Assembly (NCBI GenBank): GCA_020891255.1
Contig: BQFW01000004.1
Coordinates: 930,001-994,000 of the forward strand
DNA length: 64,000 nt
Reading direction: 5' to 3'
From: Entomortierella parvispora E1425
Taxonomy: Eukaryota > Fungi > Mortierellomycota
In this document: one piece after another, positions 5,468 to 46,517 of the stretch
How the letters are laid out: the number at the start of each line of letters is the position of its first letter
Numbering within the stretch: position 1 is the first letter of the stretch
Translations under genes and position numbers: made by a program
The notes under the pieces: generated by a model
Database searches by the model: none
What the model was told of the DNA's origin: nothing
Seen by the model: the letters and a program-made list of their open reading frames with translations, nothing else

Positions 5468-6071
5468 ATTGTACTAGAGTCCATAAAAATGTTTTCCTCG
5501 ACATCTTCTCTGACACCGTTTGAACAAGAGAACCTGCGTATGTACCTTTTATTTCAGTACCTCTCTTTTTATCGCCAAAACAGACCTTATTCACATTAAT
5601 GCATGCTCCCACCATGGACTGTCAGTGCGCAAAGTCTGCAAGGGAAATATCACCATCCGGCTCGACGAGTCAACAGGGCTCTTTGGGTCAACTGACAAGG
5701 TCGGCTTCACCCTTGGCCAGCGAGGGAACTCAACGTAAAAAATGAACGCCCAGTTTGCCACCGAGGGGAAACACAAACACAAAAACAATGAACAAGAAAA
5801 TCCAGGATGATGATGGCCTGAATCGACTCTTGTGCAACGTTCCCAAAAAAAAAAATGCGGCCATCCTTGACTGCTCTGTCTCTCTCCCTCTCTGTGCGAC
5901 CTTCTTTCCTTCTTTTTTTCTTTTCCTATAAAGCAAAGGGGCCTCAGCTCATAAATAAGCACCGCTCACCCCACTCCCCACTCACCACCAGTCAACCATT
6001 ACCTCATTCCCCTTCCTCGTTCCAGAGTTGCAGAAGCACTTTACAAGAAGCGTTCAACCCCTCCCATCAAA

Positions 6072-7345: not shown

Positions 7346-7600
7346 GATCTACTTGGCCCCGATACCCTATTATTAAAGACGTTTTGAAGACCTATCATCG
7401 TGAAAAAAAAGACAGACTCGCTGGTTTTTCCATCTGGGACGAACATTTGTAGTAATGAAAGAGAACATTTTCTTGCCCGTCCGGACCGGTGGTGAGTTTC
7501 CATCACAAATGGTTGCTTTCTCAGGAGAGAAATGAAAACATGTCTGTGCCTCGTGTTCCTTCTCAATAGATTCCAAACCAGACTCTATAACGCAGCATGT

Positions 7601-7768
7601 GTCCTCAACATTGAGTAGCTCGCGTATCAACCCTCCCAGAATGTCCTCAACATTGAGTAGCTCGCGTATCAACCCTCCCAGAATGTCCTCAACATTGAGT
7701 AGCTCGCGTATCAACCCTCCCAGAATGTCCTCAACATTGAGTTGCTCGCGTATCAACCCTGCCAGAAT
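7601..7768. repeat. Minisatellite, 4 x 42 bp direct tandem repeat
   Basis: Unit gtcctcaacattgagtagctcgcgtatcaaccctcccagaat at 7601, 7643, 7685 and 7727; the last copy has 2 substitutions. Confidence 0.95.
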
Positions 7769-17761: not shown

Positions 17762-20700
17762 TTACAACTGGCTCAAACGTTCCTGGGACAACTCCTCGGG
17801 CAACTTCTCTCCAAAGTGAGAGTACAACTTCTTGGCAAACAAGGCGACAATCTCGGGCAGTCGCATGTTATCGATGGGCATGGCCTCCTGAGCCTTGCCC
17901 TCAGTCTCGCTGCGGGCGTGCTCCATCAAGGCCTGACCGGACTGGTCATCCAGACGCATGAAGCCTTCCAGCTCGTGGGGGGCGTTCTGCCATCCTCCGA
18001 CGTGCAGAGACACCCAGGCGCGGGGGCGCTGGACTTGGCGGGGCAGCAGATCAATGGGCAGCTCGCGGTAGGTCTGAGCGGTGCCAGAGCGGTAATCAAT
18101 CACACCATCGGGGGCTCCAGTATCCACATTCATTCCAACTTCTCCTAACTCGGGCAAGCTTGCGACTGATGATAAAAAGATAAAAAAAATAATGACCATA
18201 TCAGTAAAGCTGAAAAAAAAGTGACGATGTCCAACAACAATAATGGGATATTCAATAAAATCCTTACAGAAAGTAGACTTCTCTTTCTCGACATCGGTGC
18301 TCGAAGAGCTTGCACCGCCAGAGCGACGTCTGGCAGCTTCGGCCTCGGCGTGGGCGATAGCCTCAAACTGAGCCTGGGACAGGGTCGAAGAGATAACAGC
18401 ACCAGTGGGAGCTCCAGCAGCACGTTCTTGAGTCACAGTCTGCTCCGTCGATGAACGAACAACAGTGTCATCATGGGACGACGTCACAGACTGCTCAGTC
18501 AACACAACCTTGTCGGCTTCAATCACCTGGCGTTCACGGGCCACGATCGTCTTTTCCTCATAATCCTCAACGACCTCCTCAATCTCCTCGGTCTCCTCGA
18601 AGGTCTCATAAGTCTTGACCTCATACGACCAAGCATCTAGAAACAAATAAATTTACAAAAAATGAGTAACCGAATCATAGAAACTCATCACACCACCCTG
18701 GCTAAATATGCTTACCATTGACGGCGGTCTCGCGCTCAGTCCACCGCACTCCAAACTTGTCATGGTAAGTGACCTGGAAAGCAGTCTTGGCCTCCTCGAT
18801 GGTCTTGTGGGGTCCCTCAAGCTTGTAGTCAGTCTCGCCCCAGCGGACGTAGACATAGTAAACGCTCTCGGTGCTGTTGTACAACAACTGGGTAATGTAG
18901 GTAACGCCAGTCGACTTCTCGGTCAGGACGGCATCATACACCTCGTCGTCGTAGTAGACATAGGAGGTCTTGGCAATGGGGCAGACCTTGTCGACGTGAG
19001 CCTTGCGGGTGGTAAGCACCTGGACAGTGCGCTTCCAGACGCCATCGACCTGAGTCAAGGCACCAGAGGCAGCAGCACCAGCACCAGAAGCCAGGCGACG
19101 GAACCATGAGGACTTCTTGGAAACAGCAGGCACGGCAACAACTCCAGTCTCATGGGTGGTGACGACCTCCTTGATGACCTCAACACCTTCAGTAACAACG
19201 GCCTCCTCCTTAACATGCTCCACAACAACCTCACCTTCCTGAGTAGTCGTGGTCGTATAGGTCGTGGTAGTAGAGCCAGCAAGACCATCAACTCCTGAAA
19301 CAGTAGACTGCTCCCGGCTCACAATGGTGGAGACCTCCTTCTCGTCAACGACCTCTTCAATCTCTTCAGTCTCCTCGAAGGTCTCATAAGTCTTCGCCTC
19401 GTATGACCAGGTATCTAGAAACAAATGAATTTACAAAATATTAGTAACCGAATAATTGTAACCCATCACACCGTGCTGCTGACTACGCTTACCATTGACG
19501 GCGGTCTCGCGCTCAGTCCACTGCACTCCAAACTTGTCTTGGTAGGTAACCTGGAAAGCAGACTTGGCGGCCTCAATAGTCCTGTGGGGTCCCTCGAGCT
19601 TGTAATCAGTCTCACCCCAGCGGATGTAGACGTAATACACGCTCTCAGAGGTGTTGTACAACAACTGGGTGATATAGGTGACACCAGTCGACTTTTCGGT
19701 CAACACGGCATCATACACCTCATCATCATAGTAGACATAGGAAGTCTTGGCAATAGGGCAGATCTTATCGACATGGGCCTTGCGGGTGGTAAGGACCTGG
19801 ACAGTACGCTTCCAGACGCCATCGACCTGAGTCAATGCACCCGAAGCAGCAGCACCAGCACCAGAGGCAATGCGACGGAACCAGGAAGATCCCTTGGAAA
19901 CAGCAGGTTGAGCAATCACTCCCTTTCCAGTTGTGATGACAGTGACCTCAATAGGCTGTTCCTCAGTGATGGAGGTCTTTTCAACGATATGCTCAACGGT
20001 AGTTTCGACATTGACAACATCCTCTTCAGTCGTCGAGATCACAACCTCCTTTGACTTAACCTGATCATCAACAACAATGGCCTTCCCTTGAACCTCTTCC
20101 ACAACAACATCGTCCTTGACTGTTACTTCAACCGAGGCATGCTCAACGGTGGATTGGTCAACCACCGGTGTGGCGTCACGATGGGTGATAGTTTCGACTT
20201 CAACAGCGTCAACAACCTCCTCCATCTCCTCAGTCTCATCAAAAGCTTCATAAGTCTTAACTTCATAGCTCCAAGAATCTATAGACAATAAATAGTAAAT
20301 TAGAAACTTGACCTCGATTGCAAGACAGTATTAATATAAAAGGCAATCAAACTAAATCATACCGCTGACGGCAGTCTCGCGCTCAGTCCACTGGACACCG
20401 AACTTGTCATGGTAAGTAACTTGGAAAGCGGATTTGGCCTCCTCGATGGTCTTGTGGGGTCCCTCAAGCTTGTAGTCAGTCTCGCCCCAGCGGACGTAGA
20501 CGTAGTAAACGCTCTCGGTGCTGTTGTACAACAACTGGGTAATATAGGTAACGCCAGTCGACTTCTCGGTCAGGACGGCATCATACACCTCGTCGTCGTA
20601 GTAGACATAGGAGGTCTTGGCAATGGGGCAGACCTTGTCAACATGGGCCTTGCGGATGGTAAGGACCTGGACAGTGCGCTTCCAGACGCCATCGACCTGA

Positions 20701-23700
20701 GTCAAGGCACCAACAGCAGCAACTCCAGCACCAGTGGCAAGACGACGGAACCAGGAAGATCCCTTGGAAACGGCAGGCTTGGCAACGACACCAGTCTCCT
20801 TGGTAATGACGGTCTCCTTGGCACCCTCCTCGACGATGACATCCTCCTTGGTGGTGTGCTCGAGAACAACCTCCTCGGTGGTGGTAGTGGTAGAGGTGTG
20901 CTTCTCGACCTCAACCTGATCATCCTTCTTCTCAACAATCTCCTCGCGGGTAACCTCGGTGGTGATGGCAGTCTCGTCGACAACCTCTTCAATCTCCTCG
21001 GTCTCCTCGAAGGTCTCGTAGGTCTTCACTTCATAGGTGAAGGAATCGTTGACGGCAGTCTCGCGCTCAGTCCACTCAACTCCGAACTTGTCATGGTAAG
21101 TAACCTGGAAAGCAGTCTTGGCCTCCTCAATGGTCTTGTGAGGTCCCTCGAGCTTGTAGTCAGTCTCGCCCCAGCGGACGTAGACGTAGTAAACGCTCTC
21201 GGTGCTGTTGTACAACAACTGGGTAATGTAGGTAACGCCAGTCGACTTCTCGGTCAGGACGGCATCATACACCTCGTCGTCGTAGTAGACATAGGAGGTC
21301 TTGGCAATGGGGCAGACCTTGTCAACATGGGCCTTGCGGGTGGTAAGGACCTGGACAGTGCGCTTCCAGACGCCATCGACCTGAGTCAAGGCACCAACAG
21401 CAGCAACACCAGCACCAGTGGCAAGGCGACGGAACCAGGAAGATCCCTTGGAAACGGCAGGCTTGGCAACGACACCAGTCTCCTTGGTAATGACGGTCTC
21501 CTTGGCACCCTCCTCGACGATGACATCCTCCTTGGTGGTATGCTCGAGAACAACCTCCTCGGTGGTGGTGGCAGTGGAGGTGTGCTTCTCGACCTCGACC
21601 TGCTCGTCCTTCTTCTCAACAATCTCCTCGCGGGCAACCTCGGTGGTGATGGCAGTCTCATCGACGACCTCTTCAATCTCCTCGGTCTCCTCGAAGGTCT
21701 CGTAAGTCTTGACCTCATAGGTGAAGGAATCTAGTTATAAAAAGAGAAATTAATAAGGAGAATCCATGGCAAGCAGTCGATTTGAGTGCTCGTCTGTATT
21801 GTTCTTACCATTGACAGCAGTCTCGCGCTCAGTCCACTGGACACCAAACTTGTCGTGGTAAGTGACCTGGAAAGCAGACTTGGCCTCCTCGATGGTCTTG
21901 TGGGGTCCCTCGAGCTTGTAGTCAGTCTCGCCCCAGCGGACGTAGACGTAGTAAACGCTCTCGGTGCTGTTGTACAACAACTGGGTAATGTAGGTAACGC
22001 CAGTCGACTTCTCAGTCAAAACAGCATCGTACACCTCATCGTCGTAGTAGACATAGGAGGTCTTGGCAATGGGGCAGACCTTGTCAACATGGGCCTTGCG
22101 GGTGGTAAGGACCTGGACAGTGCGCTTCCAGACGCCATCGACCTGAGTCAAGGCACCAGCAGCAGCAACACCAGCACCAGTGGCAAGGCGACGGAACCAG
22201 GAAGATCCCTTGGAAACGGCAGGCTTGGCAACGACACCAGTCTCCTTGGTAATGACGGTCTCCTTGGCACCCTCCTCGACGATGACATTCTCCTTGGTGG
22301 TGTGCTCGAGAACGACCTCCTCGGTGGTGGTAGTGGTAGAGGTGTGCTTCTCGACCTCAACCTGATCATCCTTCTTCTCAACAATCTCCTCGCGGGCAAC
22401 CTCGGTGGTGATGGCAGTCTCGTCGACAACCTCTTCAATCTCCTCGGTCTCCTCGAAGGTCTCGTAAGTCTTGACCTCATAGGTGAAGGAATCTAGTTAT
22501 AAGAAGAGAAATTAATAAGGAGAAATCATGGCAAGCAGTCGATTTGAGTGCTCGTCTGTATTGTTCTTACCATTGACAGCAGTCTCGCGCTCAGTCCACT
22601 GGACACCAAAATTGTCGTGGTAAGTAACTTGGAAAGCAGTCTTGGCCTCCTCAATGGTCTTGTGGGGTCCCTCGAGCTTGTAGTCAGTCTCGCCCCAGCG
22701 GACGTAGACGTAGTAAACGCTCTCGGTGCTGTTGTACAACAACTGGGTAATGTAGGTAACGCCAGTCGACTTCTCGGTCAGGACGGCATCGTACACCTCG
22801 TCGTCGTAGTAGACATAGGAGGTCTTGGCAATGGGGCAGACCTTGTCAACATGGGCCTTGCGGGTGGTAAGGACCTGGACAGTGCGCTTCCAGACGCCAT
22901 CGACCTGAGTCAAGGCACCAGCAGCAGCAACACCAGCACCAGTGGCAAGGCGACGGAACCAGGAAGATCCCTTGGAAACGGCAGGCTTGGCAACGACACC
23001 AGTCTCCTTGGTAATGACGGTCTCCTTGGCACCCTCCTCGACGATGACATCCTCCTTGGTGGTATGCTCGAGAACAACCTCCTCGGTGGCGGTGGCAGTG
23101 GAGGTGTGCTTCTCGACCTCAACCTGATCATCCTTCTTCTCAACAGTCTCCTCACGGACAACCTCGGTGGTGATGGCAGTCTCATCCACGATCTCCTCAA
23201 TTTCCTCAGTCTCCTCGAAGGTCTCGTAAGTCTTGACCTCATAAGTGAAGGAATCTAGTTATAAAAAGAGAAATTAATAAGGACAATCCATGGCAAGCAG
23301 GCCGATTTGAGTGTTCGTCTGTATTGCTCTTACCATTGACAGCAGTCTCGCGCTCAGTCCACTCAACTCCGAACTTGTCATGGTAAGTAACCTGGAAAGC
23401 AGACTTGGCCTCCTCAATGGTCTTGTGGGGTCCCTCGAGCTTGTAGTCAGTCTCGCCCCAGCGGACGTAGACGTAGTAAACGCTCTCGGTGCTGTTGTAC
23501 AACAACTGGGTAATGTAGGTAACGCCAGTCGACTTCTCGGTCAAGACGGCATCATACACCTCGTCGTCGTAGTAGACATAGGAGGTCTTGGCAATGGGGC
23601 AGACCTTGTCAACATGGGCCTTGCGGATGGTAAGGACCTGGACAGTGCGCTTCCAGACGCCATCGACCTGAGTCAAGGCACCAGCAGCAGCAACTCCAGC

Positions 23701-26700
23701 ACCAGTGGCAAGACGACGGAACCAGGAAGATCCCTTGGAAACGGCAGGCTTGGCAACGACACCAGTCTCCTTGGTAATGACGGTCTCCTTGGCACCCTCC
23801 TCGACGATGACATCCTCCTTGGTGGTGTGCTCGAGAACAACCTCCTCGGTGGTGGTGACAGTGGAGGTGTGCTTCTCGATCTCGACCTGCTCGTCCTTCT
23901 TCTCAACAGTCTCCTCACGGACAACCTCGGTGGTAATAGCGGTCTCATCCACGATCTCCTCAATCTCCTCGGTCTCCTCGAAGGTTTCGTAGGTCTTCAC
24001 TTCATAGGTGAAGGAATCGTTGACGGCAGTCTCGCGCTCAGTCCACTCAACTCCGAACTTGTCTTGGTAGGTAACCTGGAAAGCAGTCTTGGCCTCCTCG
24101 ATGGTCTTGTGGGGTCCCTCAAGCTTGTAGTCAGTCTCGCCCCAGCGGACGTAGACATAGTAAACGCTCTCGGTGCTGTTGTACAACAACTGGGTAATGT
24201 AGGTAACGCCAGTCGACTTCTCGGTCAAGACGGCATCGTACACCTCGTCGTCGTAGTAGACATAGGAGGTCTTGGCAATGGGGCAGACCTTGTCAACATG
24301 GGCCTTGCGGGTGGTAAGGACCTGGACAGTGCGCTTCCAGACGCCATCGACCTGAGTCAAGGCACCAACAGCAGCAACTCCAGCACCAGTGGCAAGACGA
24401 CGGAACCAGGAAGATCCCTTGGAAACGGCGGGCTTGGCAACGACACCGGTCTCCTTGGTAATGACGGTCTCCTTGGCACCCTCCTCGACGATGACATCCT
24501 CCTTGTTGGTATGCTCGAGAACAACCTCCTCGGTGGTGGTGGCAGTGGAGGTGTGCTTCTCCACCTCAACCTGCTCGTCCTTCTTCTGAACAGTCTCCTC
24601 GCGGACAACCTCGGTGGTGATGGCAGTCTCGTCGACAACCTCTTCAATCTCCTCGGTCTCCTCGAAGGTCTCGTAAGTCTTGACCTCATATGTGAAAGAA
24701 TCTAGTTGTAAAAATTGAAAAAAAATTAGGCAACATTATCAGATAAGGTATTTCTGTACTCGTCTCTAATTATCTTACCATTGACGGCAGTCTCGCGCTC
24801 AGTCCACTGGACACCGAACTTGTCGTGGTAAGTAACCTGGAAAGCGGATTTGGCCTCCTCGATGGTCTTGTGGGGTCCCTCAAGCTTGTAGTCAGTCTCG
24901 CCCCAGCGGACGTAGACGTAGTAAACGCTCTCGGTGCTGTTGTACAACAACTGGGTAATGTAGGTAACGCCAGTCGACTTCTCGGTCAGGACGGCATCAT
25001 ACACCTCGTCGTCGTAGTAGACATAGGAGGTCTTGGCAATGGGGCAGACCTTGTCAACATGGGCCTTGCGGGTGGTAAGGACCTGGACAGTGCGCTTCCA
25101 GACGCCATCGACCTGAGTCAAGGCACCAGCAGCAGCAACTCCAGCACCAGTGGCAAGACGACGGAACCAGGAAGATCCCTTGGAAACGGCAGGCTTGGCA
25201 ACGACACCAGTCTCCTTGGTAATGACGGTCTCCTTGGCACCCTCCTCGACGATGACATCCTCCTTGGTGGTATGCTCGAGAACAACCTCCTCGGTGGTGG
25301 TGACAGTGGAGGTGTGCTTCTCGACCTCGACCTGCTCGTCCTTCTTCTCAACAATCTCCTCGCGGGCAACCTCGGTGGTGATGGCAGTCTCGTCGACAAT
25401 CTCTTCAATCTCCTCAGTCTCCTCGAAGGTCTCGTAGGTCTTCACTTCATAGGTGAAGGAATCGTTGACGGCAGTCTCGCGCTCAGTCCACTCAACTCCG
25501 AACTTGTCATGGTAAGTAACCTGGAAAGCAGACTTGGCCTCCTCGATGGTCTTGTGGGGTCCCTCAAGCTTGTAGTCAGTCTCGCCCCAGCGGACGTAGA
25601 CGTAGTAAACGCTCTCGGTGCTGTTGTACAACAACTGGGTAATGTAGGTAACGCCAGTCGACTTCTCGGTCAGGACGGCATCATACACCTCGTCGTCGTA
25701 GTAGACATAGGAGGTCTTGGCAATGGGGCAGACCTTGTCAACATGGGCCTTGCGGATGGTAAGGACCTGGACAGTGCGCTTCCAGACGCCATCGACCTGA
25801 GTCAAGGCACCAGCAGCAGCAACTCCAGCACCAGTGGCAAGACGACGGAACCAGGAAGATCCCTTGGAAACGGCAGGCTTGGCAACGACACCAGTCTCCT
25901 TGGTAATGACGGTCTCCTTGGCACCCTCCTCGACGATGACATCCTCCTTGTTGGTATGCTCGAGAACAACCTCCTCGGTGGTGGTGGCAGTGGAGGTGTG
26001 CTTCTCGACCTCAACCTGATCATCCTTCTTCTCAACAGTCTCCTCACGGACAACCTCGGTGGTGATGGCAGTCTCATCCACGATCTCCTCAATTTCCTCA
26101 GTCTCCTCGAAGGTCTCGTAAGTCTTGACCTCATAAGTGAAGGAATCTAGTTATAAAAAGAGAAATTAATAAGGACAATCCATGGCAAGCAGGCCGATTT
26201 GAGTGTTCGTCTGTATTGCTCTTACCATTGACAGCAGTCTCGCGCTCAGTCCACTCAACTCCGAACTTGTCATGGTAAGTAACCTGGAAAGCAGACTTGG
26301 CCTCCTCAATGGTCTTGTGGGGTCCCTCGAGCTTGTAGTCAGTCTCGCCCCAGCGGACGTAGACATAGTAAACGCTCTCGGTGCTGTTGTACAACAACTG
26401 GGTAATGTAGGTAACGCCAGTCGACTTCTCGGTCAAGACGGCATCGTACACCTCGTCGTCGTAGTAGACATAGGAGGTCTTGGCAATGGGGCAGACCTTG
26501 TCAACATGGGCCTTGCGGATGGTAAGGACCTGGACAGTGCGCTTCCAGACGCCATCGACCTGAGTCAAGGCACCAACAGCAGCAACTCCAGCACCAGTGG
26601 CAAGACGACGGAACCAGGAAGATCCCTTGGAAACGGCGGGCTTGGCAACGACACCGGTCTCCTTGGTAATGACGGTCTCCTTGGCACCCTCCTCGACGAT

Positions 26701-29700
26701 GACATCCTCCTTGTTGGTATGCTCGAGAACAACCTCCTCGGTGGTGGTGGCAGTGGAGGTGTGCTTCTCCACCTCAACCTGCTCGTCCTTCTTCTGAACA
26801 GTCTCCTCGCGGACAACCTCGGTGGTGATGGCAGTCTCGTCGACAACCTCTTCAATCTCCTCGGTCTCCTCGAAGGTCTCGTAAGTCTTGACCTCATATG
26901 TGAAAGAATCTAGTTGTAAAAATTGAAAAAAAATTAGGCAACATTATCAGATAAGGTATTTCTGTACTCGTCTCTAATTATCTTACCATTGACGGCAGTC
27001 TCGCGCTCAGTCCACTGGACACCGAACTTGTCGTGGTAAGTAACCTGGAAAGCGGATTTGGCCTCCTCGATGGTCTTGTGGGGTCCCTCAAGCTTGTAGT
27101 CAGTCTCGCCCCAGCGGACGTAGACGTAGTAAACGCTCTCGGTGCTGTTGTACAACAACTGGGTAATGTAGGTAACGCCAGTCGACTTCTCGGTCAAGAC
27201 GGCATCATACACCTCGTCGTCGTAGTAGACATAGGAGGTCTTGGCAATGGGGCAGACCTTGTCAACATGGGCCTTGCGGGTGGTAAGGACCTGGACAGTG
27301 CGCTTCCAGACGCCATCGACCTGAGTCAAGGCACCAGCAGCAGCAACTCCAGCACCAGTGGCAAGACGACGGAACCAGGAAGATCCCTTGGAAACGGCAG
27401 GCTTGGCAACGACACCAGTCTCCTTGGTAATGACGGTCTCCTTGGCACCCTCCTCGACGATGACATCCTCCTTGGTGGTATGCTCGAGAACAACCTCCTC
27501 GGTGGTGGTGACAGTGGAGGTGTGCTTCTCGACCTCGATCTGCTCGTCCTTCTTCTCAACAATCTCCTCGCGGGCAACCTCGGTGGTGATGGCAGTCTCG
27601 TCGACAATCTCTTCAATCTCCTCAGTCTCCTCGAAGGTCTCGTAGGTCTTCACTTCATAGGTGAAGGAATCGTTGACGGCAGTCTCGCGCTCAGTCCACT
27701 CAACTCCGAACTTGTCATGGTAAGTAACCTGGAAAGCAGACTTGGCCTCCTCGATGGTCTTGTGGGGTCCCTCAAGCTTGTAGTCAGTCTCGCCCCAGCG
27801 GACGTAGACGTAGTAAACGCTCTCGGTGCTGTTGTACAACAACTGGGTAATGTAGGTAACGCCAGTCGACTTCTCGGTCAAGACGGCATCATACACCTCG
27901 TCGTCGTAGTAGACATAGGAGGTCTTGGCAATGGGGCAGACCTTGTCAACATGGGCCTTGCGGATGGTAAGGACCTGGACAGTGCGCTTCCAGACGCCAT
28001 CGACCTGAGTCAAGGCACCAGCAGCAGCAACTCCAGCACCAGTGGCAAGGCGACGGAACCAGGAAGATCCCTTGGAAACGGCAGGCTTGGCAACGACACC
28101 AGTCTCCTTGGTAATGACGGTCTCCTTGGCACCCTCCTCGACGATGACATCCTCCTTGGTGGTATGCTCGAGAACAACCTCCTCGGTGGTGGTGGCAGTG
28201 GAGGTGTGCTTCTCGACCTCAACCTGATCATCCTTCTTCTCAACAATCTCCTCGCGGGCAACCTCGGTGGTGATGGCAGTCTCATCCACGATTTCCTCAA
28301 TTTCCTCAGTCTCCTCGAAGGTCTCGTAAGTCTTGACCTCATAGGTGAAGGAATCTAGTTATAAAAAGAGAAATTAATAAGGAAAATTCATGGCAAGCAG
28401 GCCGATTTGAGTGTTCGTCTGTATTGCTCTTACCATTGACAGCAGTCTCGCGCTCAGTCCACTCAACTCCGAACTTGTCATGGTAAGTAACCTGGAAAGC
28501 AGTCTTGGCCTCCTCAATGGTCTTGTGGGGTCCTTCGAGCTTGTAGTCAGTCTCGCCCCAGCGGACGTAGACGTAGTAAACGCTCTCGGTGCTGTTGTAC
28601 AACAACTGGGTAATGTAGGTAACGCCAGTCGACTTCTCGGTCAAGACGGCATCATACACCTCGTCGTCGTAGTAGACATAGGAGGTCTTGGCAATGGGGC
28701 AGACCTTGTCAACATGGGCCTTGCGGGTGGTAAGGACCTGGACAGTGCGCTTCCAGACGCCATCGACCTGAGTCAAGGCACCAGCAGCAGCAACTCCAGC
28801 ACCAGTGGCAAGACGACGGAACCAGGAAGATCCCTTGGAAACGGCAGGCTTGGCAACGACACCAGTCTCCTTGGTAATGACGGTCTCCTTGGCACCCTCC
28901 TCGACGATGACATTCTCCTTGGTGGTGTGCTCGAGAACAACCTCCTCGGTGGTGGTGACAGTGGAGGTGTGCTTCTCGACCTCGACCTGCTCGTCCTTCT
29001 TCTCAACAGTCTCCTCACGGACAACCTCGGTGGTAATAGCGGTCTCATCCACGATCTCCTCAATTTCCTCAGTCTCTTCGAAGGTCTCGTAGGTCTTGAC
29101 CTCATATGTGAAAGAATCTAGTTGTAAAAATTGAAAAAAATTAGGCAACATTATCAGATAAGGTATTTCTGTACTCGTCTCTAATTATCTTACCATTGAC
29201 GGCAGTCTCGCGCTCAGTCCACTGGACACCGAACTTGTCATGGTAAGTAACTTGGAAAGCAGTCTTGGCCTCCTCAATGGTCTTGTGGGGTCCCTCGAGC
29301 TTGTAGTCAGTCTCGCCCCAGCGGACGTAGACGTAGTAAACGCTCTCGGTGCTGTTGTACAACAACTGGGTAATGTAGGTAACGCCAGTCGACTTCTCGG
29401 TCAGGACGGCATCATACACCTCGTCGTCGTAGTAAACATAGGAGGTCTTGGCAATGGGGCAGACCTTGTCAACATGGGCCTTGCGGGTGGTAAGGACCTG
29501 GACAGTGCGCTTCCAGACGCCATCGACCTGAGTCAAGGCACCAACAGCAGCAATTCCAGCACCAGTGGCAAGACGACGGAACCAGGAAGATCCCTTGGAA
29601 ACGGCAGGCTTGGTAACGACACCAGTCTCCTTGGTAATGACGGTCTCCTTGGCACCCTCCTCGACGATGACATCCTCCTTGGTGGTATGCTCGAGAACAA

Positions 29701-35700: not shown

Positions 35701-38700
35701 CAGTCTCGCCCCAGCGGACGTAGACGTAGTAAACGCTCTCGGTGCTGTTGTACAACAACTGGGTAATGTAGGTAACGCCAGTCGACTTCTCGGTCAAGAC
35801 GGCATCGTACACCTCGTCGTCGTAGTAGACATAGGAGGTCTTGGCAATGGGGCACACCTTGTCGACGTGAGCCTTGCGGGTAGTAAGGACCTGGACAGTG
35901 CGCTTCCAGACGCCATCGACCTGAGTCAAGGCACCAGCAGCAGCAACTCCAGCACCAGTGGCAAGGCGACGGAACCAGGAAGATCCCTTGGAAACGGCAG
36001 GCTTGGCAACGACACCAGTCTCCTTGGTAATGACGGTCTCCTTGGCACCCTCCTCGACGATGACATCCTCCTTGGTGGTGTGCTCGAGAACAACCTCCTC
36101 GGTGGTGGTAGTGGTAGAGGTGTGCTTCTCGACCTCAACCTGATCATCCTTCTTCTCAACAATCTCCTCGCGGGTAACCTCGGTGGTGATGGCAGTCTCG
36201 TCGACAACCTCTTCAATCTCCTCGGTCTCCTCGAAGGTCTCGTAGGTCTTCACTTCATAGGTGAAGGAATCGTTGACGGCAGTCTCGCGCTCAGTCCACT
36301 CAACTCCGAACTTGTCATGGTAAGTAACCTGGAAAGCAGTCTTGGCCTCCTCAATGGTCTTGTGAGGTCCCTCGAGCTTGTAGTCAGTCTCGCCCCAGCG
36401 GACGTAGACGTAGTAAACGCTCTCGGTGCTGTTGTACAACAACTGGGTAATGTAGGTAACGCCAGTCGACTTCTCGGTCAGGACGGCATCATACACCTCG
36501 TCGTCGTAGTAGACATAGGAGGTCTTGGCAATGGGGCAGACCTTGTCAACATGGGCCTTGCGGGTGGTAAGGACCTGGACAGTGCGCTTCCAGACGCCAT
36601 CGACCTGAGTCAAGGCACCAGCAGCAGCAACTCCAGCACCAGTGGCAAGACGACGGAACCAGGAAGATCCCTTGGAAACGGCGGGCTTGGCAACGACACC
36701 GGTCTCCTTGGTAATGACGGTCTCCTTGGCACCCTCCTCGACGATGACATCCTCCTTGGTGGTATGCTCGAGAACAACCTCCTCGGTGGTGGTGACAGTG
36801 GAGGTGTGCTTCTCGACCTCGATCTGCTCGTCCTTCTTCTCAACAATCTCCTCGCGGATAACCTCGGTGGTGATGGCAGTCTCGTCGACAACCTCTTCAA
36901 TCTCCTCGGTCTCCTCGAAGGTCTCGTAAGTCTTGACCTCATAGGTGAAGGAATCTAGTTATAAAAAGAGAAATTAATAAGGAGAATCCATGGCAAGCAG
37001 TCGATGTGAGTGCTCGTCTGTATTGCTCTTACCATTGACAGCAGTCTCGCGCTCAGTCCACTGGACACCAAACTTGTCGTGGTAAGTGACCTGGAAAGCA
37101 GTCTTGGCCTCCTCAATGGTCTTGTGGGGTCCCTCGAGCTTGTAGTCAGTCTCGCCCCAGCGGACGTAGACGTAGTAAACGCTCTCGGTGCTGTTGTACA
37201 ACAACTGGGTAATGTAGGTAACGCCAGTCGACTTCTCAGTCAAAACGGCATCGTACACCTCATCATCATAGTAGACATAGGAGGTCTTGGCAATGGGGCA
37301 GACCTTGTCAACATGGGCCTTGCGGGTAGTAAGGACCTGGACAGTACGCTTCCAGACGCCATCGACCTGAGTCAAGGCACCCACTGCAGCAACACCAGCG
37401 CCAGTGGCAAGGCGGCGGAACCAGGAAGATCCCTTGGAAACAGCGGGCTTGGTCACAACACCACCCTCCTTAACCACAACCTTCTCAGTGGTCTTGACAT
37501 CTGCAGTAGCCTGCTGCTCCTTCTTCAGCTCCTCAACCTTGGACTCTTCGACGACCTCCTCAATCTCCTCGGTCTCCTCGAAGGTCTCGTAAGTCTTTAC
37601 CTCATAGGTGAAGGAATCGTTCACAGCAGTTTCACGCTCAGTCCACTGAACTCCGAACTTGTCATGGTAGGTAACCTGGAAAGCAGACTTGGCCTCCTCG
37701 ATAGTCTTGTGGGGTCCCTCGAGCTTGTAGTCAGTCTCGCCCCAGCGGACGTAGACGTAGTAAACGCTCTCGGTGCTGTTGTACAACAACTGGGTAATGT
37801 AGGTAACGCCAGTCGACTTCTCAGTCAAAACAGCATCGTACACCTCATCGTCGTAGTAGACATAGGAGGTCTTGGCAATGGGGCAGACCTTGTCAACATG
37901 GGCCTTGCGGGTAGTAAGAACCTGGACAGTGCGCTTCCAGACGCCATCGACCTGAGTCAAGGCACCCACTGCAGCAACACCGGCACCGGTAGCAAGACGG
38001 CGGAACCAGGAAGATCCCTTTGAAACGGCTGGCTTGGCAATAACACCGACCTCCTTTGTTGTGGTGGCTTCGGTGGTAGTGCCAGTCGACTTGATATCGG
38101 AAACATCGACCTCAGTGTTCACACTTTCGACTGTAGTCTCGATGGTGACATCCACGCCAGAAGTGCTGGTCTCGACAGCCTCCTTGTTAATGACTTGGTT
38201 GTCGACAGCGACAGTCTCGCCCTGGATAGTGCTCAAAACGGTGTTGTCTTGAATGACCGTAGTGGAAGTCTCAGTCTTCTTGACGTTTTCCTCGACGCCA
38301 ATTTCTCGCTCGCGGTTGATGATAGTCGCAGCCTCCTCTTCGTCATATACCTCCTCGACCTCCTCGATCTCCTCAAAGGTCTCGTAGGTCTTGACCTCAT
38401 AGGCCCAGGTGTCGCTGACAGTTGTCTCGCGCTCAGTCCACTGGACACCGAACTTGTCGTGGTAAGTAACCTGGAAAGCGGTCTTGGCCTCCTCGATGGT
38501 CTTGTGAGGTCCCTCGAGCTTGTAGTCAGTCTCGCCCCAGCGGACGTAGACGTAGTAGACACTCTCGGTGCTGTTGTACAACAATTGGGTAATGTAGGTA
38601 ACGCCAGTCGACTTCTCAGTCAAAACGGCATCGTAAACCTCGTTGTCGTAGTAGACATAGGAAGTCTTGGCAATGGGGCACACCTTGTCGACGTGAGCCT

Positions 38701-41700
38701 TGCGGGTAGTAAGAACCTGGACGGTACGCTTCCAGACGCCATCGACCTGAATCAAGGCACCAGCAGCGGCAACACCCGCACCAGTAGCAAGACGACGGAA
38801 CCAAGAAGATCCCTTGGAAACAGCAGGCTTGTTGATCTCAAGAACTGAGGTGGTTGATTCAGTGGTGGTCTTCTGCTCCTTGGAGGCTTCATCCTTGACA
38901 ACTGTCTCGACAACTTGGTGATGAGTGATTGTGTTGTCCTCGGTGGAAACACCAGTGCGCTCCCCACTGACGATTGTGGTAATCTCCTCAACATCATCAT
39001 CAGCCTCAGTGATGTACTGCTCCTCAGTCTCGAAGTCGTGATGCACGATCAACCACTCAGCTATTATTGAAGGAAGCAGTGGAGTCAGTAACTACATTGC
39101 CGCACACTTTTCTGGAACCATACATCATTTCATAATTCGGCTTCCTTACTGTTCGTCACAATGGCACGCTCCTCCCAGGCGACACCAAAAGTCTCGCGGT
39201 ACTTTGTGGTGAAGACAGACTTGGCCTGGTCAACGGTCTCGTAAGGTCCATCAAGAGTGTAATCGCTCTCGTCCCAGCGGAGGTATACGTAGTAAGTCTT
39301 GGTGACAGTGTTGTACAACATCTGGGAGACATAGGTTACGCCAGTTGATCGTTGGGTGAGAATGGTGTGGTAGCTTTCGCTGTCCTTGTAGACCTGAACC
39401 TGATCGGCAATGGGGCACACGGAATCGACCAAAGAGTGGTGGGTGGATGTGGTTGAGCTAATGGAGGTTCCAACCTGCTTTCGAGCCACCTCTCCGCCAG
39501 AGCTCTCCTCGCGGTTTTCGGTGACAGTCTCGTAGGCGATCTCCTCGGTTGACCAGCTCTCGCCGAGAGCGACGGGGTTGTTACGCTCGCTCCACTCAAT
39601 GCCGATCTTATCCGCAAAGGTTTCCTTGTAGGCGATCTCGGCGGCCTCAACGGTCTTGTAAGGACCCTCCAATGAGCCGTTGGTTGAGCCCCACTGGACG
39701 TAGACGTAGTATACCTTCTCGGTGTTATCCAAGAGGAGCTGCATCTCATAGCTCACGTTGGTACCTGCCTCCACCAGGTGAGTTGCCCAGACAGTTCCGT
39801 CACGCTCCACGACAGTGGCATTCTCCAAAGAGCACTGGGGATGAACACGGACAATGTAGCGGGTGATGGTACGGGTGGTGGTGGTCGTGATGGTGTACTT
39901 GGTAATGTACTGGACATAACGAGTGTACACGGTTCTGTACTCCGTAATTTCGCGCTCGATTTCTAAATCAAAATATAAAGATATCGTCAGAACAAAATTC
40001 CTGTTGCATTCTAGTATGAAGCAGTGAGGACATACCATTGTAGTCAGAAGTGTTCTCGGACGCCAACCATCCAAAGTTGGTGGTCTCGTACAACCCTAGG
40101 ATAAAAATATGCCAACAAGTTAGTTCTCTTGCTCATTTAACAGCAGTCACTCTTGCCACCAGAAGGCTCTTCTTACAGACAGTCTGAGAAGCAGATCGGT
40201 CAACCAAGACAGCCTTCTCATTGATAAAATCGACGACGTGGCTGGTGTTGGAGACCAAGGACAATTCTCCTTGCTCAGAGAACTGCCACATCTGACGAGA
40301 AGAGTCCGATTGCTATTAATTGAAAGTAGAGAATGGATCAGTTTGGAGTTCAAAGGAAATGATTAAAAGTGTCCCTTTGAATCACGAACCTTGGAGGCGA
40401 GGATCAAGCCACCCTCAACCGTAGCAGTCAGATAAAGACCGGTCAAACGGTTAATGATGTAAGAATCAACCAACTTCCAGAGCTGAAGCTCAACCAAGGC
40501 ATGGCGCTCTGCAGACGAGAAGCGCTTCTGGACATCAAGGAGAATCGAGGCTCCCTCAGCTCCCTTCTCAAGGAGTTGAGTAGAAGAAATGGAGGCGACC
40601 TTGTTGCCGGCAACGAGGTAGAACCAGGACTCCCTGGGAGCAACGACGTACTGCTCAGTTTCAGCATACTCAATAACCTCATCAGCTATGAACGACGAAA
40701 AGAATGTTAGTCTGACATCAAAAATTAAAGCACAAACTGCCATAATCATGCTGAAACGGAATACATACCACCAGCAGATGATCGCATGACGACCTCCTCG
40801 AACTCCTCGTAGAACTCGTAATCCTCTCTGTTCTCGACCTCGAGGTAAACAACCTCGGTCCAGATGAGCCAAGAGAAGGAAACCTCATACACCAACCCTA
40901 TTGAGATTATAGACACAATTAGTAGCCTTTTCGATTTCAAAAAATAAATAGTGAAGGTACACGCAGGGGTTGCCTTACAGGTAATGGCGGTAGTGCGCTC
41001 AACAAGGGTGACAGATCCATCACGAACATTGAGAGCCAAGTCCGAGTGACCAACAGGGAAGATGTATCCACCCTCAATGGTCCACTTGATGGAGTTCTTG
41101 TGCAAAGCCTGAACCAAACGGGCTCCCTGCTTAGCATCTCCCTCAATGGTCAAGGCAAGACCAGTACGCTTGTTGATCAGGTAGCCATCCTTAAGGGTCC
41201 AGAGCTGGATATCAAGGAGAGCATGCTGGTTGGCAGAAGCGGCGGTGGTCTGGGGGTGGACCGTAGCATAGGCGCCAACCTTCATGTGGTTCTTGCCAAA
41301 GCCGTGGTCGATATCAATAACGTAGCCGTTAGAGGTGCGGATGAAGAAGTACGAGCACTCGGAGAACTTCTCTATCTTGCGGGTAACAGCCTTCTCTCTG
41401 GCCAAGAAGGTGACTTCGCTCTCGTTCAAGGTGTCGAGTTGTTCCTCGACCTGCTCGGTGACAATGGGCTCCAATGTCAACCAAGAGAAATGAACCTCGG
41501 CAAAACTCCCTAGAAGTAGATCCGTTTATCAGTCAATTATTCATTCTTGAGAAATATGCAGAAAGCTCTCGCAATTGCGATTCATCGCGTGATATCTTAC
41601 AGCTGTGGAGGATCTCTCCGCGACGCTCCTTGCGGATGAAGGCGCGGGATCCCTGGCGACCATAAGACAAAAAGAGAACAAACTCCTTGCGGGCAGCGAG

Positions 41701-44700
41701 GCGAATAACTCCGTTTTCAATAATCCAGCGCTGAGTGTCGGCGCCAGTTTTTGTGGTCTGGATCAACTTGGCGTTACCCTCAACTAATGAAACGTTATAA
41801 TTGACAAAAGTCCGTTAGAACTAAGATCCTTTCCTTGCGATTACAGTAATAAGCATGTGCCTGAAAACTCGAACAAAAAGATGAATCCTTACTCTTATCA
41901 ACAGCAAGCGCAAGGTTGGAGCGACGGTTAATGATGAGACCATCCTGGAAGCGCCAAAGCTGGAGCTCAAGAAGGGCATGCGAGTGCTTTCCAGACTTGA
42001 GCTTCTGGTGGGCAAGGTGCACATGAGTGCCGGCTTTAAGATGCTGGATCTGACGACCATGCTCAAGCTCGAGGACAAGATCGCTAATTCCAGACTTCAG
42101 GTAGAACCAGCAGTTGGTTGGGGGGGTCGAGTGCTCGACCACGCGAGCGAGGTGAGTAGTCTCGTATTCCTTCAACAACTCGACATCAGTCTCGACGGAG
42201 GAGTAGTCTCTCTCGGTCTTGAGCCAGGTGAAGTGAACAGCCTCGAATGACCCTATGGGTTGCGAATTAAAAAAAAGGAGCAAGTAGAAACAAATGATGG
42301 TCAATTGATCGCCCTTTTGTTACTGCTTTCCATTCGATCCGACATCTCGAAACTTACAGCGCTGGTCCAAGTTCTTCTTCTCCTTGCGCTCCTTGATGGA
42401 CAACTTAGCACCATCGCGGGTACCATCACCGTCGATATCGAGGACCAAGTTAGGGCGGGACTTCAAATGAATGAAGCCATTTGTGACGGCCCACTGCTGG
42501 TTCTCGTTGTTCTCAGACTTGCGGCTCCACTGGATCACACGGGTGCCGGTAAGCAATGTGGCCTGGGCAACATCAAGAACAAGACCAGTGCGACGGTTGA
42601 TCACGAATCCATCCTGGAACTTCCAGAGCTGAAGCTCGAGAAGAGCATGTCGCTTGGCTGAAGCACGGAGCTTCTGGTGGTTGAGCTCAATGTTGGCACC
42701 GGGCTTGGAGTGGTCACGTAAGAAGCCGTGCTCAACATCCAAGACAAAGCCAGAGGCCTTGGACTTGATATAGAACCAGGCCTCGGTGGGGAACGAAGCG
42801 TGGATGGAGATCTTGGCCTCCTCCATGCCCTCGGTGTAGGAAGCGGAGCGGGAGGGGATTCTCTCGTGGGCTAAGAAAGACGCACGAGCAACCTCCAAGG
42901 TCCCTATTTGATTAAAAAAAAAAGGGCATAAAGCACATCAGTGATCAGAATCGTGACATTAGAACATGAGCAGACCTTTAAGCGATCAGCAAAATAAGCT
43001 TCCTGTGATTATTTTTCGTACAGGCGTTGGTGGTGATCTTGGTGGTCTTGTTCTCGACCAACTGGACACGGGAGCCATCCTTGTTGGACTCGACGTTGAT
43101 GATGAGCTTGGGGTTGTGGCGCAACTGAATGTTGCCGTCGACGAGGTTCCAGAGCTGGTTGTGAAGACCATCCTCCTGTTTCGACAATGTCGGAAAAGAA
43201 GAATCAGTAACCACATCTCATAACATATCGTCAAAACCTGAAACAGCGCATCCTTCAAAAGAGTGTTTCATTACCTCGGTCGTTGCCTTGTGGTGCTGAA
43301 CGAGCTTGACGCCAACGACAGCAGATCGACCATAAATGTCAATGACATAGTTGGTCCTGCGGTTGATGAAGTAGCCATCCTCGTATCTCCAAAGCTGACG
43401 CTCGACAAGGCTCTTGTCCGAGTCCTCCAGCGAACGCTGCTTCTTCATGGAGATGTAAGCACCCACATCAGTAGGGGAGGTGATCCAGCCAGCCTCAAGA
43501 TCCATGACCAAACCGGAAGCAGACTTGATGTAGAACCAGTCATTGCTCTGGATCTCCACCACCTGGGACTTGGTGACAGTTTCTGTGAATGAAAAAAATG
43601 GAAGATTTTTTAGGTCAGAAATCGGGTACACGAAGGTTATTTGCTTTCAAGTCTTTGGGACAATCACGACATGTTCAAATTCTTACCGATGATGGTGCGG
43701 GTGATAATGCGGTCAGAGGACAACCACTCGTATGTGGCCAATTGGAAGACCCCTATTGTACAATGAAAGGCTAGGTGTTAGGCAGGATCGTTTTTGAGAA
43801 TGAAATATGATAGGAGCCTCTTGCTGCTCATAAAAAAAAAGCATCCGAGATTTACATTGCTGGTCGAGGTTGTTCTGGGCCTTGGGGCGCTGCAACGACA
43901 AACGAGAGCCAGCCTTGGAGCCATCGCCCTCGATATCGATCGCGAACGTGGGCTTGCCCTGGATGACCAAAGCTCCGTTGACAGACTCCCAGCGCTGGTG
44001 CTGGGCCTCCTTTCCTTGCTTGGACACAGCCTGCATGAGGCGGGCGCCATAGCGGACAACACCCTGCTTGCAGTCAAGCACATATCCCGATCTCCTGTTG
44101 ATCAACTGACCATCCTGGTACCGCCAGAGCTGGGACTCGATTGCGGCATTGTCACCGTTGGTGGCGGTCGTCGCCTGGGTGCTGGTGATGACCAGGTTGG
44201 GTGCCATCGAGTCACCTTCGACATCAATGACATGACCAGAGGAGAGCGACTTGATATAGAACCAGCCATTGAGGGGCAAGGTGGTCGTAGTCGTGGATTG
44301 CACGGGGGCGGGGACAACGACTGTGGTAAAAAATAAAAGGATAAAAAAAAAAGTTCAGCAAGGGCTGAGTGATCCGATGGCATTGATGCGGAATTTAACC
44401 AAGATTGTGGTCATGGCTCTTACTTTCACGCTGCTGAACCTCGATTGTGCTGGTGCTTGCGGGGGCAACCAACCATGCAAATCTGGCCTCCTCGAGGATC
44501 CCTAGTTGAGAGAGAAAAAAGAAAAAAAAAACGGGAAAGAAGGAATGCACGTTCTAATATTAGGCTTCGGCTCTGAATGTCTCGACCTTCCCGCTTGCCT
44601 CGCTCACAGGTTCGGTGCAATCAAGCGATTAAGCGCAGAAAAAAAAAGTAAAAGGACCACTGCTTACATTGCTGGTCTGCGTTAGCGGTTGCCTTGCGCT

Positions 44701-46517
44701 CGCCAATGGCAATCTTGGCACCATCCCTGGAACCATCTCCGTCAATGTCCAAAACGAGACGGGAGTTGTAAACGTTGGCAATAAAGCCGTTCTCGTAGAA
44801 CCAGTGCTGGTTATGGGCATCCTATACAAGTCAACGAGGGAAAAAAATGCACCCCAAAAGTTAATTAAGGCCCTCCTCCATGGTAAAGCAATGCACAGAA
44901 TCGAGAACATTCTGTTGATCTGTACCTTTCCAGACTTGCGCTGCCACTGAACAACACGGGCGGCAAGTTTGAGAGTGCCTGCAAGTGAAGATTTAAAGAA
45001 TGGGAATAATGAGGTGTAAGCCACGGGTCATCAAAGCTCAATGACATGAGCACATGAACAAGATGCATACCTCCTTGGATATCAAGAACAAAACCAGTGC
45101 GACGGTTGATCAAGAAACCAGACTCATACCGCCAGAGCTGGAGCTCAAGAAGCGAATGCCGACCATCACCATTGTCGATCTTTTGGTGGTTCATCTCTGC
45201 GCGGGCACCGGCCTTCATGGGATCGGTGAAGTAGCCGTGCTCAATATCGACAACAAGACCAGAGGCCTTGGACTTGATGTAGAACCAGCTGGTGGGGAAG
45301 TTATCTGGTCTGATCGAGAGGGACTCTGCTCTGGAAGGTGAAGGCGAGGCGGGACGGCTGTCTCCACCACCATTGTAGTACCCTGGATAGATTCAAAAGG
45401 CGATATGAGCATGAGCATGAGTAAGAGCAGAACCAGCCGTTGTGAGCACCCATTTCATCGTTTTCTGCTTCCAGAGCACCCTTTGCTCTGTCAGCACTGC
45501 AGCTGCAGTGCTGATGCAGTTCAAAGAATGACAAACAAAGCTCCAGAAGAGCAGACAGACTATTGTCGGTCTGCTCTTTTTTTTTTTTTTGTCCATTCTT
45601 ACATTTTTGCCTCTCGTTGTATGCCTTCTTCTCTTGGATGATGATACGGGTGCCGTGGCGAGAGGGGTCACCGTCAACGGTGACAACGAACTTTGTGTTG
45701 CTAGCCAAGGTCAGCACACCGTCGTCATTGAGCCAGTGTTGACCAGCAGCGTCCTATAGGATACCAACAGTGTCGAAAGTGCCTGTGTGAGTGATCTTGC
45801 GCAGGATGACCATGTTGTGGGGGTTTTTTTTTTCTCTTCTTTTACCTTGCCAGTCTTGCGAACGTTTTGAATGACACGCGAGCCATTGTGGACCCCACCT
45901 GTAATTGGAGTAGATGATACTTGGGGGTCAGCTTACTCAAGCACAACATAGTATTCACAATCGTACGCACAGAAACAGATCCTGCTCAGCGGCTTCTTCT
46001 GGCGTCTTCTTCCCGTCCCCTGAATTTTCATGCATGCAACTTTTTTCGATAGAAAACACAAGGAATCTCCTCTTGGTCCAAAGGGGATTCCCACGGGTCA
46101 TCCGTTGAACAGTCAACTGTCCTCAGAAAAGGGGATGAAAAATGCCTGCATCCATGGTCCCATGCTCTCTGTTGGAATAATCCTCGGTCTTCAATTGAGA
46201 CAAAAAAAGGCACAGAAGAGCACTGAATCTTTTTTTTTTTTACCTTGGACATCCAAGACGTGACCAGTTCTCACGTTCACAATATAACCATCCTCTGTCC
46301 TCCAGAGCTGCTGCTCCAGCAAGGGAATGGAATCTGCGCTGCTCTTGATAGGCTTGCGGTTGTTCAACTCAACACGCGCGTTGGCCTTGAGGGGATCCTT
46401 CAGGAACCCAGACTCAATATCGAGAACGAGTCCGGAACCTGATTGGATATAAAAAGTGCCCGAGGGGAAGGACAAGACTCTGCTAGATCTAGCCGAGGAT
46501 GAAGGGGAGCCTGCCAT
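17762..46517 (-). CDS. Giant multi-exon protein (about 8,000+ aa): 8 ricin-type beta-trefoil domains, 30 WGR-like domains and a unique C-terminal domain; Gellin-like
   Basis: Start MAGSPSSS at 46517. Successive minus-strand exons join in frame across GT..AG introns down to TAA at 17762, with no intervening stop/start or intergenic gap visible. Not every small exon in the 40-46.5 kb part was fully resolved. Confidence 0.8.
18640..39060 (-). repeat. Coding tandem array of 28 near-identical units (684 bp coding standard unit, about 585 bp short variant, about 762 bp with intron), one WGR-like domain per unit
   Basis: 28 copies of ...YVYVRWGETDYKLEGPHKTIEEAK.AFQVTY.DKFGV.WTERE counted from about 18835 to about 38530. 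Confidence 0.95.
39150..39860 (-). other. Two divergent WGR-like domains preceding the homogeneous array
   Basis: VHPQCSL...YEMQLLLDNTEKVYYVYVQWGSTNGSLEGPYKTVEAAEIAYKETFADKIGIEW and VDSVCPIA...YVSQMLYNTVTKTYYVYLRWDESDYTLDGPYETVDQAKSVFTTKYRETFGVAW. Confidence 0.8.
40100..46470 (-). other. Eight tandem ricin B/CBM13-type beta-trefoil domains (coding part of the giant gene)
   Basis: Recurring pattern WFYIKS.SG.V.D.E.G ... LLE.QLW.Y.DG..INRRTG.VLD ... Q.W...NG.I......VLDIDGD. Domains start near 46460, 45290, 44270, 43540, 42780, 42100, 41350 and 40625. Confidence 0.85.

Follow-up and report, generated by a model that had tools for sequence, protein, structure and literature searches.

A predicted giant protein of Mortierellaceae: a candidate Gellin-like relative with a lineage-specific array of PARP-type WGR folds

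Do the minus-strand coding segments that fill 17.7-46.6 kb of a genomic window from the fungus Entomortierella parvispora E1425 belong to one gene, and if so, what might its product do? The window is a stretch of 64,000 nucleotides (nt; contig BQFW01000004.1, positions 930,001 to 994,000), and the coordinates used here are those of the window unless another contig is named. In this region, it holds a chain of open segments whose frame shifts at intervals of a few hundred to two thousand bases. A preliminary description had taken these for one spliced frame of more than 8,000 residues and its product for a scaffold of the Gellin family or a related one. To our knowledge, Gellins are so far the sole molecular explanation for the arrest of bleeding in aseptate fungi, and work on them has been confined to Mucorales. 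In this report, we found that the segments form a single gene, whose predicted product carries eight beta-trefoils, then thirty WGR-fold modules on acidic spacers rich in Val, Glu and Thr (V/E/T), and finally a family-specific end domain of 133 residues. From sequence comparison, we conclude that this predicted protein is a Gellin-like relative whose WGR array is specific to its lineage.

Gene model and orthologues

The breaks between the open segments are short introns with fungal consensus ends. Our splice model came from a dynamic-programming parse (codon log-odds, GT-AG introns of 45-500 nt, no in-frame stops) and was then refined against orthologue proteins; three introns were set by this comparison, namely those with a donor near 19471 and an acceptor near 40292, and an in-frame intron in the tail. 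The model gives one stop-free predicted frame on the minus strand, from an ATG at 46517-46515 to a TAA at 17764-17762, in 40 exons separated by 39 GT-AG introns. Most of these introns (35 of 39) are in phase 1, placed at domain borders. The limits given in the preliminary description, 17762-46517, coincide exactly with the start and stop codons of the model, and its frame of 8,000+ residues is borne out: the predicted coding sequence of 24,909 nt specifies 8,303 residues, with a mass of ~937 kDa, an isoelectric point of 4.81 and a net charge of about -550. Nothing at the N-terminus resembles a signal peptide.

The reading of the locus as one gene rests on comparison. Aligned with five annotated orthologues, the first 1,700 residues of the model show no indel at any junction. 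This stretch includes the passage from trefoils to WGR modules (39061-40176), where introns at 40176-40096, 40035-39963 and 39149-39061 flank an exon of 60 nt and one of 813 nt, the latter encoding WGR modules 1 and 2. Further, both ends of the model match a complete orthologue, EDD11_010109 of Mortierella claussenii (P0213), which in 2,663 residues has the same N-terminus, eight trefoils, five WGR modules and the same tail. Together with the stop-free frame, these comparisons show one conserved gene of Mortierellaceae, encoding a predicted cytoplasmic, very acidic, modular giant.

All orthologues of the gene are from Mortierellaceae. At least 25 species from about a dozen genera of the family have an annotated protein in which WGR modules come after eight trefoils, and the architecture is thus already present in GenBank, as "hypothetical protein, partial". 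Nearly all of these public orthologues stop at contig ends, where short-read assemblies break inside the array. Over the trefoil region, the closest orthologue is that of Gryganskiella cystojenkinii (86% identity), while those of Entomortierella species are 70-72% identical; for this one gene, the comparison agrees poorly with the species name Entomortierella parvispora. A JGI match (P0021) that was considered as a possible transcript proved to be genomic DNA, an intron-bearing contig from an ordinary soil metagenome.

Downstream, an open reading frame (ORF) of 1,273 residues on the plus strand (13715-17536) runs towards the giant gene and faces its 3' end. Its surroundings are GC-rich (0.565); the ORF itself is rich in Ser, Arg and Ala and had no Pfam match.

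The trefoils and their Mucorales relatives

Eight beta-trefoils occupy residues 16-1417. Each has a first strand of the W/Y-F-Y-I-K-S type and a terminal Q-x-W, with a phase-1 intron inside the codon for Trp. The exon of trefoil 5, used as a query against the organism's own genome (38.9 Mb in 20 contigs), recovered all eight, the number counted in the preliminary description, and found no other locus. Since no other gene in the genome has this trefoil type, the giant gene is its only candidate Gellin. On the minus strand, as are all features of the gene, trefoil 1 (residues 16-160, with three introns) lies at 45381-46472, trefoil 2 (186-334) at 44497-45305, trefoil 4 (545-689) at 43023-43556, trefoil 6 (914-1053) at 41508-42127 and trefoil 8 (1287-1417), the most divergent, at 40094-40644; these five were recognized by the own-genome search. 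Trefoil 7 (1100-1230; 40896-41369) was found in the same way and scored 23.8 bits with Pfam RicinB_lectin_2, under the cut-off of 25.6 bits. Trefoil 3 (372-514; 43751-44282) reached 36.3 bits with that model and 31.6 bits with Ricin_B_lectin. The highest score, 51.5 bits, was that of trefoil 5 (726-872; 42251-42796), which is encoded in a single exon (42903-42358). Its Pfam match and its readable Q-L-W, Q-Q-W and Q-R-W motifs are those of an R-type lectin of family CBM13 (ricin B fold).

The kinship of these trefoils was examined in a search of 1.84 billion representative proteins with the exon of trefoil 5 as query. Next in rank to the orthologues from Mortierellaceae and their fragments, and above all ordinary lectins, stood giant proteins of Mucorales (1,765-6,419 residues, some of them partial) from Phycomyces, Rhizopus, Gilbertella, Radiomyces, Cokeromyces, Cunninghamella, Hesseltinella, Apophysomyces and Spinellus. 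In ten of these giants, an iterated hidden Markov model located trefoils at conserved positions, exactly ten per protein; the ten-trefoil giants among the best matches have 3,000-6,400 residues. The best natural sequence match of trefoil 5 in the PDB is entry 6LCI ("mdaA-1"), which aligns from end to end over the whole domain with an expectation value (E) of 3.3e-9. The same entry matches the first trefoil of the Mucorales giants with an E of 1.4e-67 and ~1.3 bits per residue, and is probably the first-trefoil domain of such a giant from another Mucorales species. The Gellins of Mucorales are reportedly built of ten Gll domains, which are said to unfold under flow and form sheets, while hydrophobic motifs bind membranes; loss of Gellin function reportedly leaves the bleeding of protoplasm uncontrolled.

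Related arrays also occur in rhizomycelial chytrids: giants of Cladochytrium replicatum (P0084, 4,921 residues) and Nowakowskiella species (P0079, P0239) have eight to ten related trefoils, which in the former precede ~3,500 residues of V/E/T-rich sequence. Gellin-like proteins may accordingly not be confined to Mucoromycota. We found no WGR domain in the Mucorales giants or in these chytrid relatives, and a lineage-specific gain of the WGR array is therefore plausible.

The WGR array

Residues 1474-8046 comprise thirty modules that bear the signature R-W-G-E-T-D-Y. A count of the motif RWGE(T)DY, variants included, and an independent own-genome protein search both gave thirty copies in the giant gene, as had been claimed for the locus before; the search added three copies on another contig. 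The leading two modules are divergent, at 42-48% identity to the rest, while the other 28 are 91-100% identical in protein sequence. Module 1 (39568-39852), with the motif QWGSTNG, is 42% identical to an array module, and module 2 (39151-39435), with RWDESDY, was recognized by motif and own-genome search. The near-identical units of modules 3-28, delimited by the same search and by comparison of units, extend over 20364-38698; module 29 (19494-19778; 91% identical) and module 30 (18717-19001; 96%) complete the array.

The repeat unit is 228 residues (684 nt), although some units have 195, 218 or 262-269. An intron-free reference unit at 35588-36271 begins with a connector strand (DSFTYEVKTYETF), after which come ~75 residues of acidic spacer rich in V/E/T, a hydrophobic segment rich in Gly and Ala (SSWFRRLATGAGVAAAGAL) and the WGR fold of ~110 residues. 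Connector and spacer together (90 residues) have a net charge of -19, and the charge of the whole array is about -537. The Gly/Ala-rich segment sits ahead of most WGR modules, and ~28 such segments are present. Tandem Repeats Finder returned no rows for the region, its longest period (500 nt) being shorter than the 684-nt unit.

Most units, but not all, have a phase-1 intron of 76-84 nt at the same site. The introns of the repeat region read AAT G/GTAAGA...CTAG/AT, are 76-79 nt long and are all in phase 1; of 26 unit boundaries tabulated between 20364 and 37033, 18 have one at the identical position and the others have none. Comparison of repeats and the periodicity of ORFs reveal a higher order of repetition at 24560-29570, where a block of 2,208 nt (three units and two introns) recurs at 98-100% identity. 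On this degree of identity, the three-unit duplication is judged to be very recent, and the patchy distribution of the boundary intron and the near-identity of the block suggest that unequal exchange or gene conversion is still going on.

Among 20 full-length units, mean DNA identity is 96%, and codon differences are 3,607 synonymous and 1,319 non-synonymous; in the WGR part alone, the counts are 1,758 and 475. Only 25 of the 228 columns are variable, mostly conservatively and mostly in the spacer. From the synonymous excess, every unit is under purifying selection, which neither a pseudogene nor an assembly artefact would show. This bears on the possibility that the locus comprises two or more genes, a decaying pseudogene or a repeat inflated by the assembler. 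Arrays this similar are indeed hard to assemble, and the truncation of nearly all public orthologues could be read in that light. Yet the spliced frame of 24.9 kb has no stop, and the units differ in substitutions, lengths and the presence of introns, as would not be expected of collapsed or duplicated reads. Given also that the orthologues are colinear, one of them complete, and that the 38.9 Mb are assembled into only 20 contigs, we consider an artefact very improbable.

Behind the array, the last 232 residues are unique, in keeping with the tail of the preliminary description. They are interrupted by the in-frame intron mentioned above (18166-18267; 102 nt, GTAAGG...CATCAG), which if unspliced would encode a hydrophobic insert missing from the orthologues. 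The final 133 residues (17765-18163) form a conserved domain, with a mean column identity of 69% in an alignment of 22 sequences, that is present only in orthologues of the giant gene. It had no Pfam match and no usable match in the ESM Atlas, and its AlphaFold model (predicted local distance difference test, pLDDT, of 55) was too poor for a fold search.

The identity of the repeated fold was less evident from Pfam than from other methods. Against the Pfam WGR model (PF05406; cut-off 22 bits), module 1 scored 23.4 bits, and an exon with three modules scored 26.6 bits in sum with no single stretch above the cut-off. A profile of 39 modules from many Mortierellaceae, in turn, matched only the WGR domains of PARP2, PARP3 and PARP1 in the PDB, and that of PARP2 (E 7e-9) was covered entirely, including the closing C-terminal strand. 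An AlphaFold model of 36197-36685 has a pLDDT of >90 over the WGR core; with the module model as a query, the top 30 Foldseek matches were all PARP WGR domains, the best with a TM-score of 0.76, a root-mean-square deviation of 2.2 Å and ~26% identity; the model superposes on the WGR domain of PARP2. In the ESM Atlas, the nearest folds and the feature neighbours of the module were all eukaryotic PARPs. Because profile, structure prediction and ESM Atlas all point to the PARP WGR domain, we regard the assignment of the modelled fold as secure, and the PARP-type WGR modules of the preliminary description stand, the Pfam comparison by itself being marginal.

The WGR domain of PARP enzymes is a sensor of DNA breaks. 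Does the array sense them too? In PARP2, the residues in contact with DNA are N127, N128, K130, Y132, W151, R153, Q159, K179, K183 and Y201 (PMC6294510). These were mapped onto the module through a HMMER alignment of the 39-module profile. Three of the ten (W151, Y132 and K183) are kept in the module; N127 is deleted, and the others are replaced (N128T, K130V, R153E, Q159D, K179T and Y201F/W). The eponymous W-G-R has thus become W-G-E, and the replacing Glu (E99) is nearly invariant across the 39 sequences. Pfam detected no PARP regulatory or catalytic domain in any scanned exon of the giant gene. With most contacts lost, Arg changed to Glu and the array strongly acidic, the function of the modules is probably not that of a PARP-like sensor of DNA breaks.

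These residues also bear on whether the array could be a 30-valent binder of nucleic acid or poly(ADP-ribose), capturing broken DNA, RNA or the latter polymer, for example from lysed nuclei at wounds. Such a role would draw on the sensor fold and on the retained equivalents of W151, Y132 and K183. It is hard to reconcile with the near-invariant Glu, with the acidity of the array and with the loss of seven contacts, among them those to the 5'-phosphate, and we think it highly unlikely. Instead, we infer that the WGR fold serves here as a structural or mechanical module, which suggests that a cytoplasmic scaffold has been built here from repeats of the PARP sensor fold.

The genome also has a canonical PARP (BRCT-WGR-PARP_reg-PARP), on the minus strand of contig 7 at ~963400-965700. 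Its WGR motif is R-W-G-R-V-G, and it is only 31% identical to an array module. A protein kinase gene adjoins it.

The own-genome copies outside the giant gene belong to one paralogue, on contig 11 at 227522-231567 (5522-9567 of locus L010, minus strand). Its head consists of VIT and vWA domains (122.7 and 107.8 bits in Pfam). Behind it stand three WGR modules that share 83-94% identity with the modules of the giant; one ORF of 853 residues contains both the head and the first of them; trefoils and the 133-residue tail domain are absent. Within this genome, the modules occur in these two genes only.

Function and comparison with known systems

The most economical functional reading of these data is that the giant protein does in Mortierellaceae what the Gellins do in Mucorales, as their counterpart: a scaffold that would gel the protoplasm when triggered by flow or wounding. 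We put this at close to an even chance, or slightly below it. The trefoils would supply the force-labile and membrane-binding functions of the Gellin type, and the WGR array, standing in place of the low-complexity region rich in V, E, T and K of the Mucorales Gellins, would be a tether in the manner of beads on a string. In resting cytoplasm, the acidic spacers might keep the chain expanded and soluble. Shear, perhaps with neutralization of charge by Ca2+ that enters at the wound, would extend the chain; domains would then unfold, and the ~28 Gly/Ala-rich segments, with beta-prone strands, could cross-link chains and trap organelles. The segments would thus be latent cross-linking or membrane-binding elements that become accessible when there is flow. 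Both the part given to Ca2+ and the cross-linking by Gly/Ala-rich segments are inference only.

Several observations weigh against this reading. The ten-trefoil giants of Mucorales (for example, Phycomyces KAL0083561.1, Rhizopus RCI07331.1 and Radiomyces XP_051428040.1) are themselves taken by us to be Gellins, on the count of ten domains that Gellins reportedly have and on 6LCI, and the gene models of all orthologues of the giant gene are predictions. In a maximum-likelihood tree of domains, the Mortierellaceae trefoils form one clade (support 99/93) and each Mucorales Gll position forms its own. The sister of the Mortierellaceae clade is a set of small single-trefoil proteins of Mucoromycota, and a matrix of BLAST scores of the eight trefoils against Gll1-10 has no diagonal. 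One-to-one orthology of the eight trefoils with Gll1-10 is ruled out by the separate clade and the missing diagonal. At the other end, the C-terminal 250-300 residues of Mucorales giants (P0065, P0070, P0072 and P0208) are a HAD-like hydrolase domain with the first motif F-D-x-x-G-T (PF00702, 29 bits against a cut-off of 26.4 in Hesseltinella); this domain is absent from the giant protein, and a profile comparison with hhalign found its 133-residue tail unrelated to the Mucorales C-termini (probability 0.2). Finally, other Mortierellaceae carry the WGR module behind VIT-vWA heads, GTPase heads of the dynamin/MMR_HSR1 type and ARM_5-NACHT heads, which hints at a biology other than gelation. The link to the Gellin family, as proposed in the preliminary description, is consequently upheld as homology of the trefoils to those of the ten-trefoil giants and not as orthology: the protein has eight trefoils in a clade of their own, without a colinear match to ten Gll domains that each have a conserved identity.

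The small single-trefoil proteins in the sister group are 143-206 residues long and come from Calcarisporiella, Pilobolus, Umbelopsis and Mucor (P0105, P0121, P0129, P0134 and P0189).

The proteins that bear the WGR module, and sometimes the same trefoil type, behind ARM_5-NACHT or GTPase heads (P0054, P0237, P0057, P0039, P0035 and P0050) look like products of domain shuffling through phase-1 introns and are possibly linked to NLR-like systems. They raise the alternative of an immune or conflict scaffold, in which trefoils and WGR modules would be the ligand-binding or assembly modules of an NLR-like defence repertoire, and the giant a multivalent platform or trap for endobacteria, viruses or damaged organelles instead of a wound gel. 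This idea gains from the combination of the module with ARM_5-NACHT, GTPase and VIT-vWA heads (P0054, P0237, P0057, P0039 and P0044), and highly similar tandem repeats are typical of the C-termini of fungal NLRs. It loses by the purifying selection on the repeats, whose 25 variable columns form no hypervariable patch, by the confinement of the modules in their own genome to the giant and one VIT-vWA gene, and by the finding in Pfam of no NTPase domain in the giant gene. We therefore judge it unlikely. Membership of the giant in the fungal NLR-STAND proteins with diversifying repeats is rejected, Pfam having shown no NACHT or NB-ARC NTPase and the repeats no hypervariable site.

The same proteins allow a broader speculation. 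The WGR fold may have been exapted in Mortierellaceae as a structural or assembly module that does not bind DNA, and the WGR giant and the VIT-vWA, GTPase and NACHT proteins may together constitute a network for clotting or damage response in the cytoplasm. The module that they have in common would recruit partners to the gel, and the network would be an intracellular analogue of coagulation. We hold such a network to be a doubtful, if attractive, proposition.

A scaffold of this kind need not have any special role at wounds. It could instead be a constitutive, titin-like spring or tether of the cytoplasm, elastic or viscosity-setting, that organizes organelles or resists streaming in coenocytic hyphae. 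Its beads on a string, separated by acidic V/E/T-rich spacers, are reminiscent of folded domains with PEVK-type spacers; it is also giant, and it is conserved across the family. However, no cytoskeleton-binding or motor-binding domain is among the Pfam matches, and wounds are the site of action of the only proteins related to the trefoil array that have been characterized (PMC10873517, PMC12712441). We thus favor this possibility little, and retain the Gellin counterpart as the preferred reading.

If the Gellin-like reading is true, trefoil arrays have been coupled to different bodies: a low-complexity region and a HAD-like end in Mucorales, the WGR array here and V/E/T-rich tails in chytrids. 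The gene would provide Mortierellomycotina with a concrete candidate for the Gellin's task of stopping bleeding. To those who study PARPs, it offers a naturally occurring WGR fold stripped of its DNA contacts and set thirty times in tandem; we found no paper on WGR arrays or on the trefoil-WGR architecture. For the study of protein mechanics and materials, a predicted chain of 937 kDa in which acidic springs link 38 folded beads and ~28 Gly/Ala-rich segments recur at regular distances appears well suited to force spectroscopy.

The giant protein may be set beside four known systems. With the Mucorales giants, taken here to be the Gellins of Nguyen et al. (2021, Curr Biol 31:271; cited in PMC10873517 and PMC12712441), it shares an N-terminal array of homologous trefoils (summed E of 1e-84 to 1e-50, 33-37% identity) whose domains open with the start motif W-F-[FY]-I-K, a multi-thousand-residue acidic region after the trefoils (2,000-4,000 residues rich in V, E, T and K in Mucorales, with a composition similar to that of the spacers here), giant size, the lack of a signal peptide and an origin in aseptate Mucoromycota; it differs in having eight trefoils rather than ten and in the thirty WGR-fold domains that punctuate its acidic region. 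With PARP1, PARP2 and PARP3 (PF05406; PDB 6F5B, 6F1K, 2EOC and 2CR9), it has the WGR fold in common, of the eukaryotic PARP type and not the bacterial one. The array module departs from them in its thirty tandem copies, where a PARP has one, in the absence of the PARP regulatory and catalytic domains, in W-G-E and a loop that is four residues shorter, and in the seven of ten DNA contacts that it has lost. The VIT-vWA, GTPase and ARM_5-NACHT proteins of the family (such as Linnemannia hyalina KI688_007577) share the full module of 140 residues, including the Gly/Ala-rich segment and the connector strand, but have one to three copies of it, different heads and no tail domain. Giants of the titin type and von Willebrand factor are functional analogues only. 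Like them, the protein would alternate small folded domains with charged, extensible spacers and may respond in a similar way to tensile or shear force; unlike them, it is fungal and predicted to be cytoplasmic, and with no kinship to them in sequence or fold, its mechanics are proposed by analogy.

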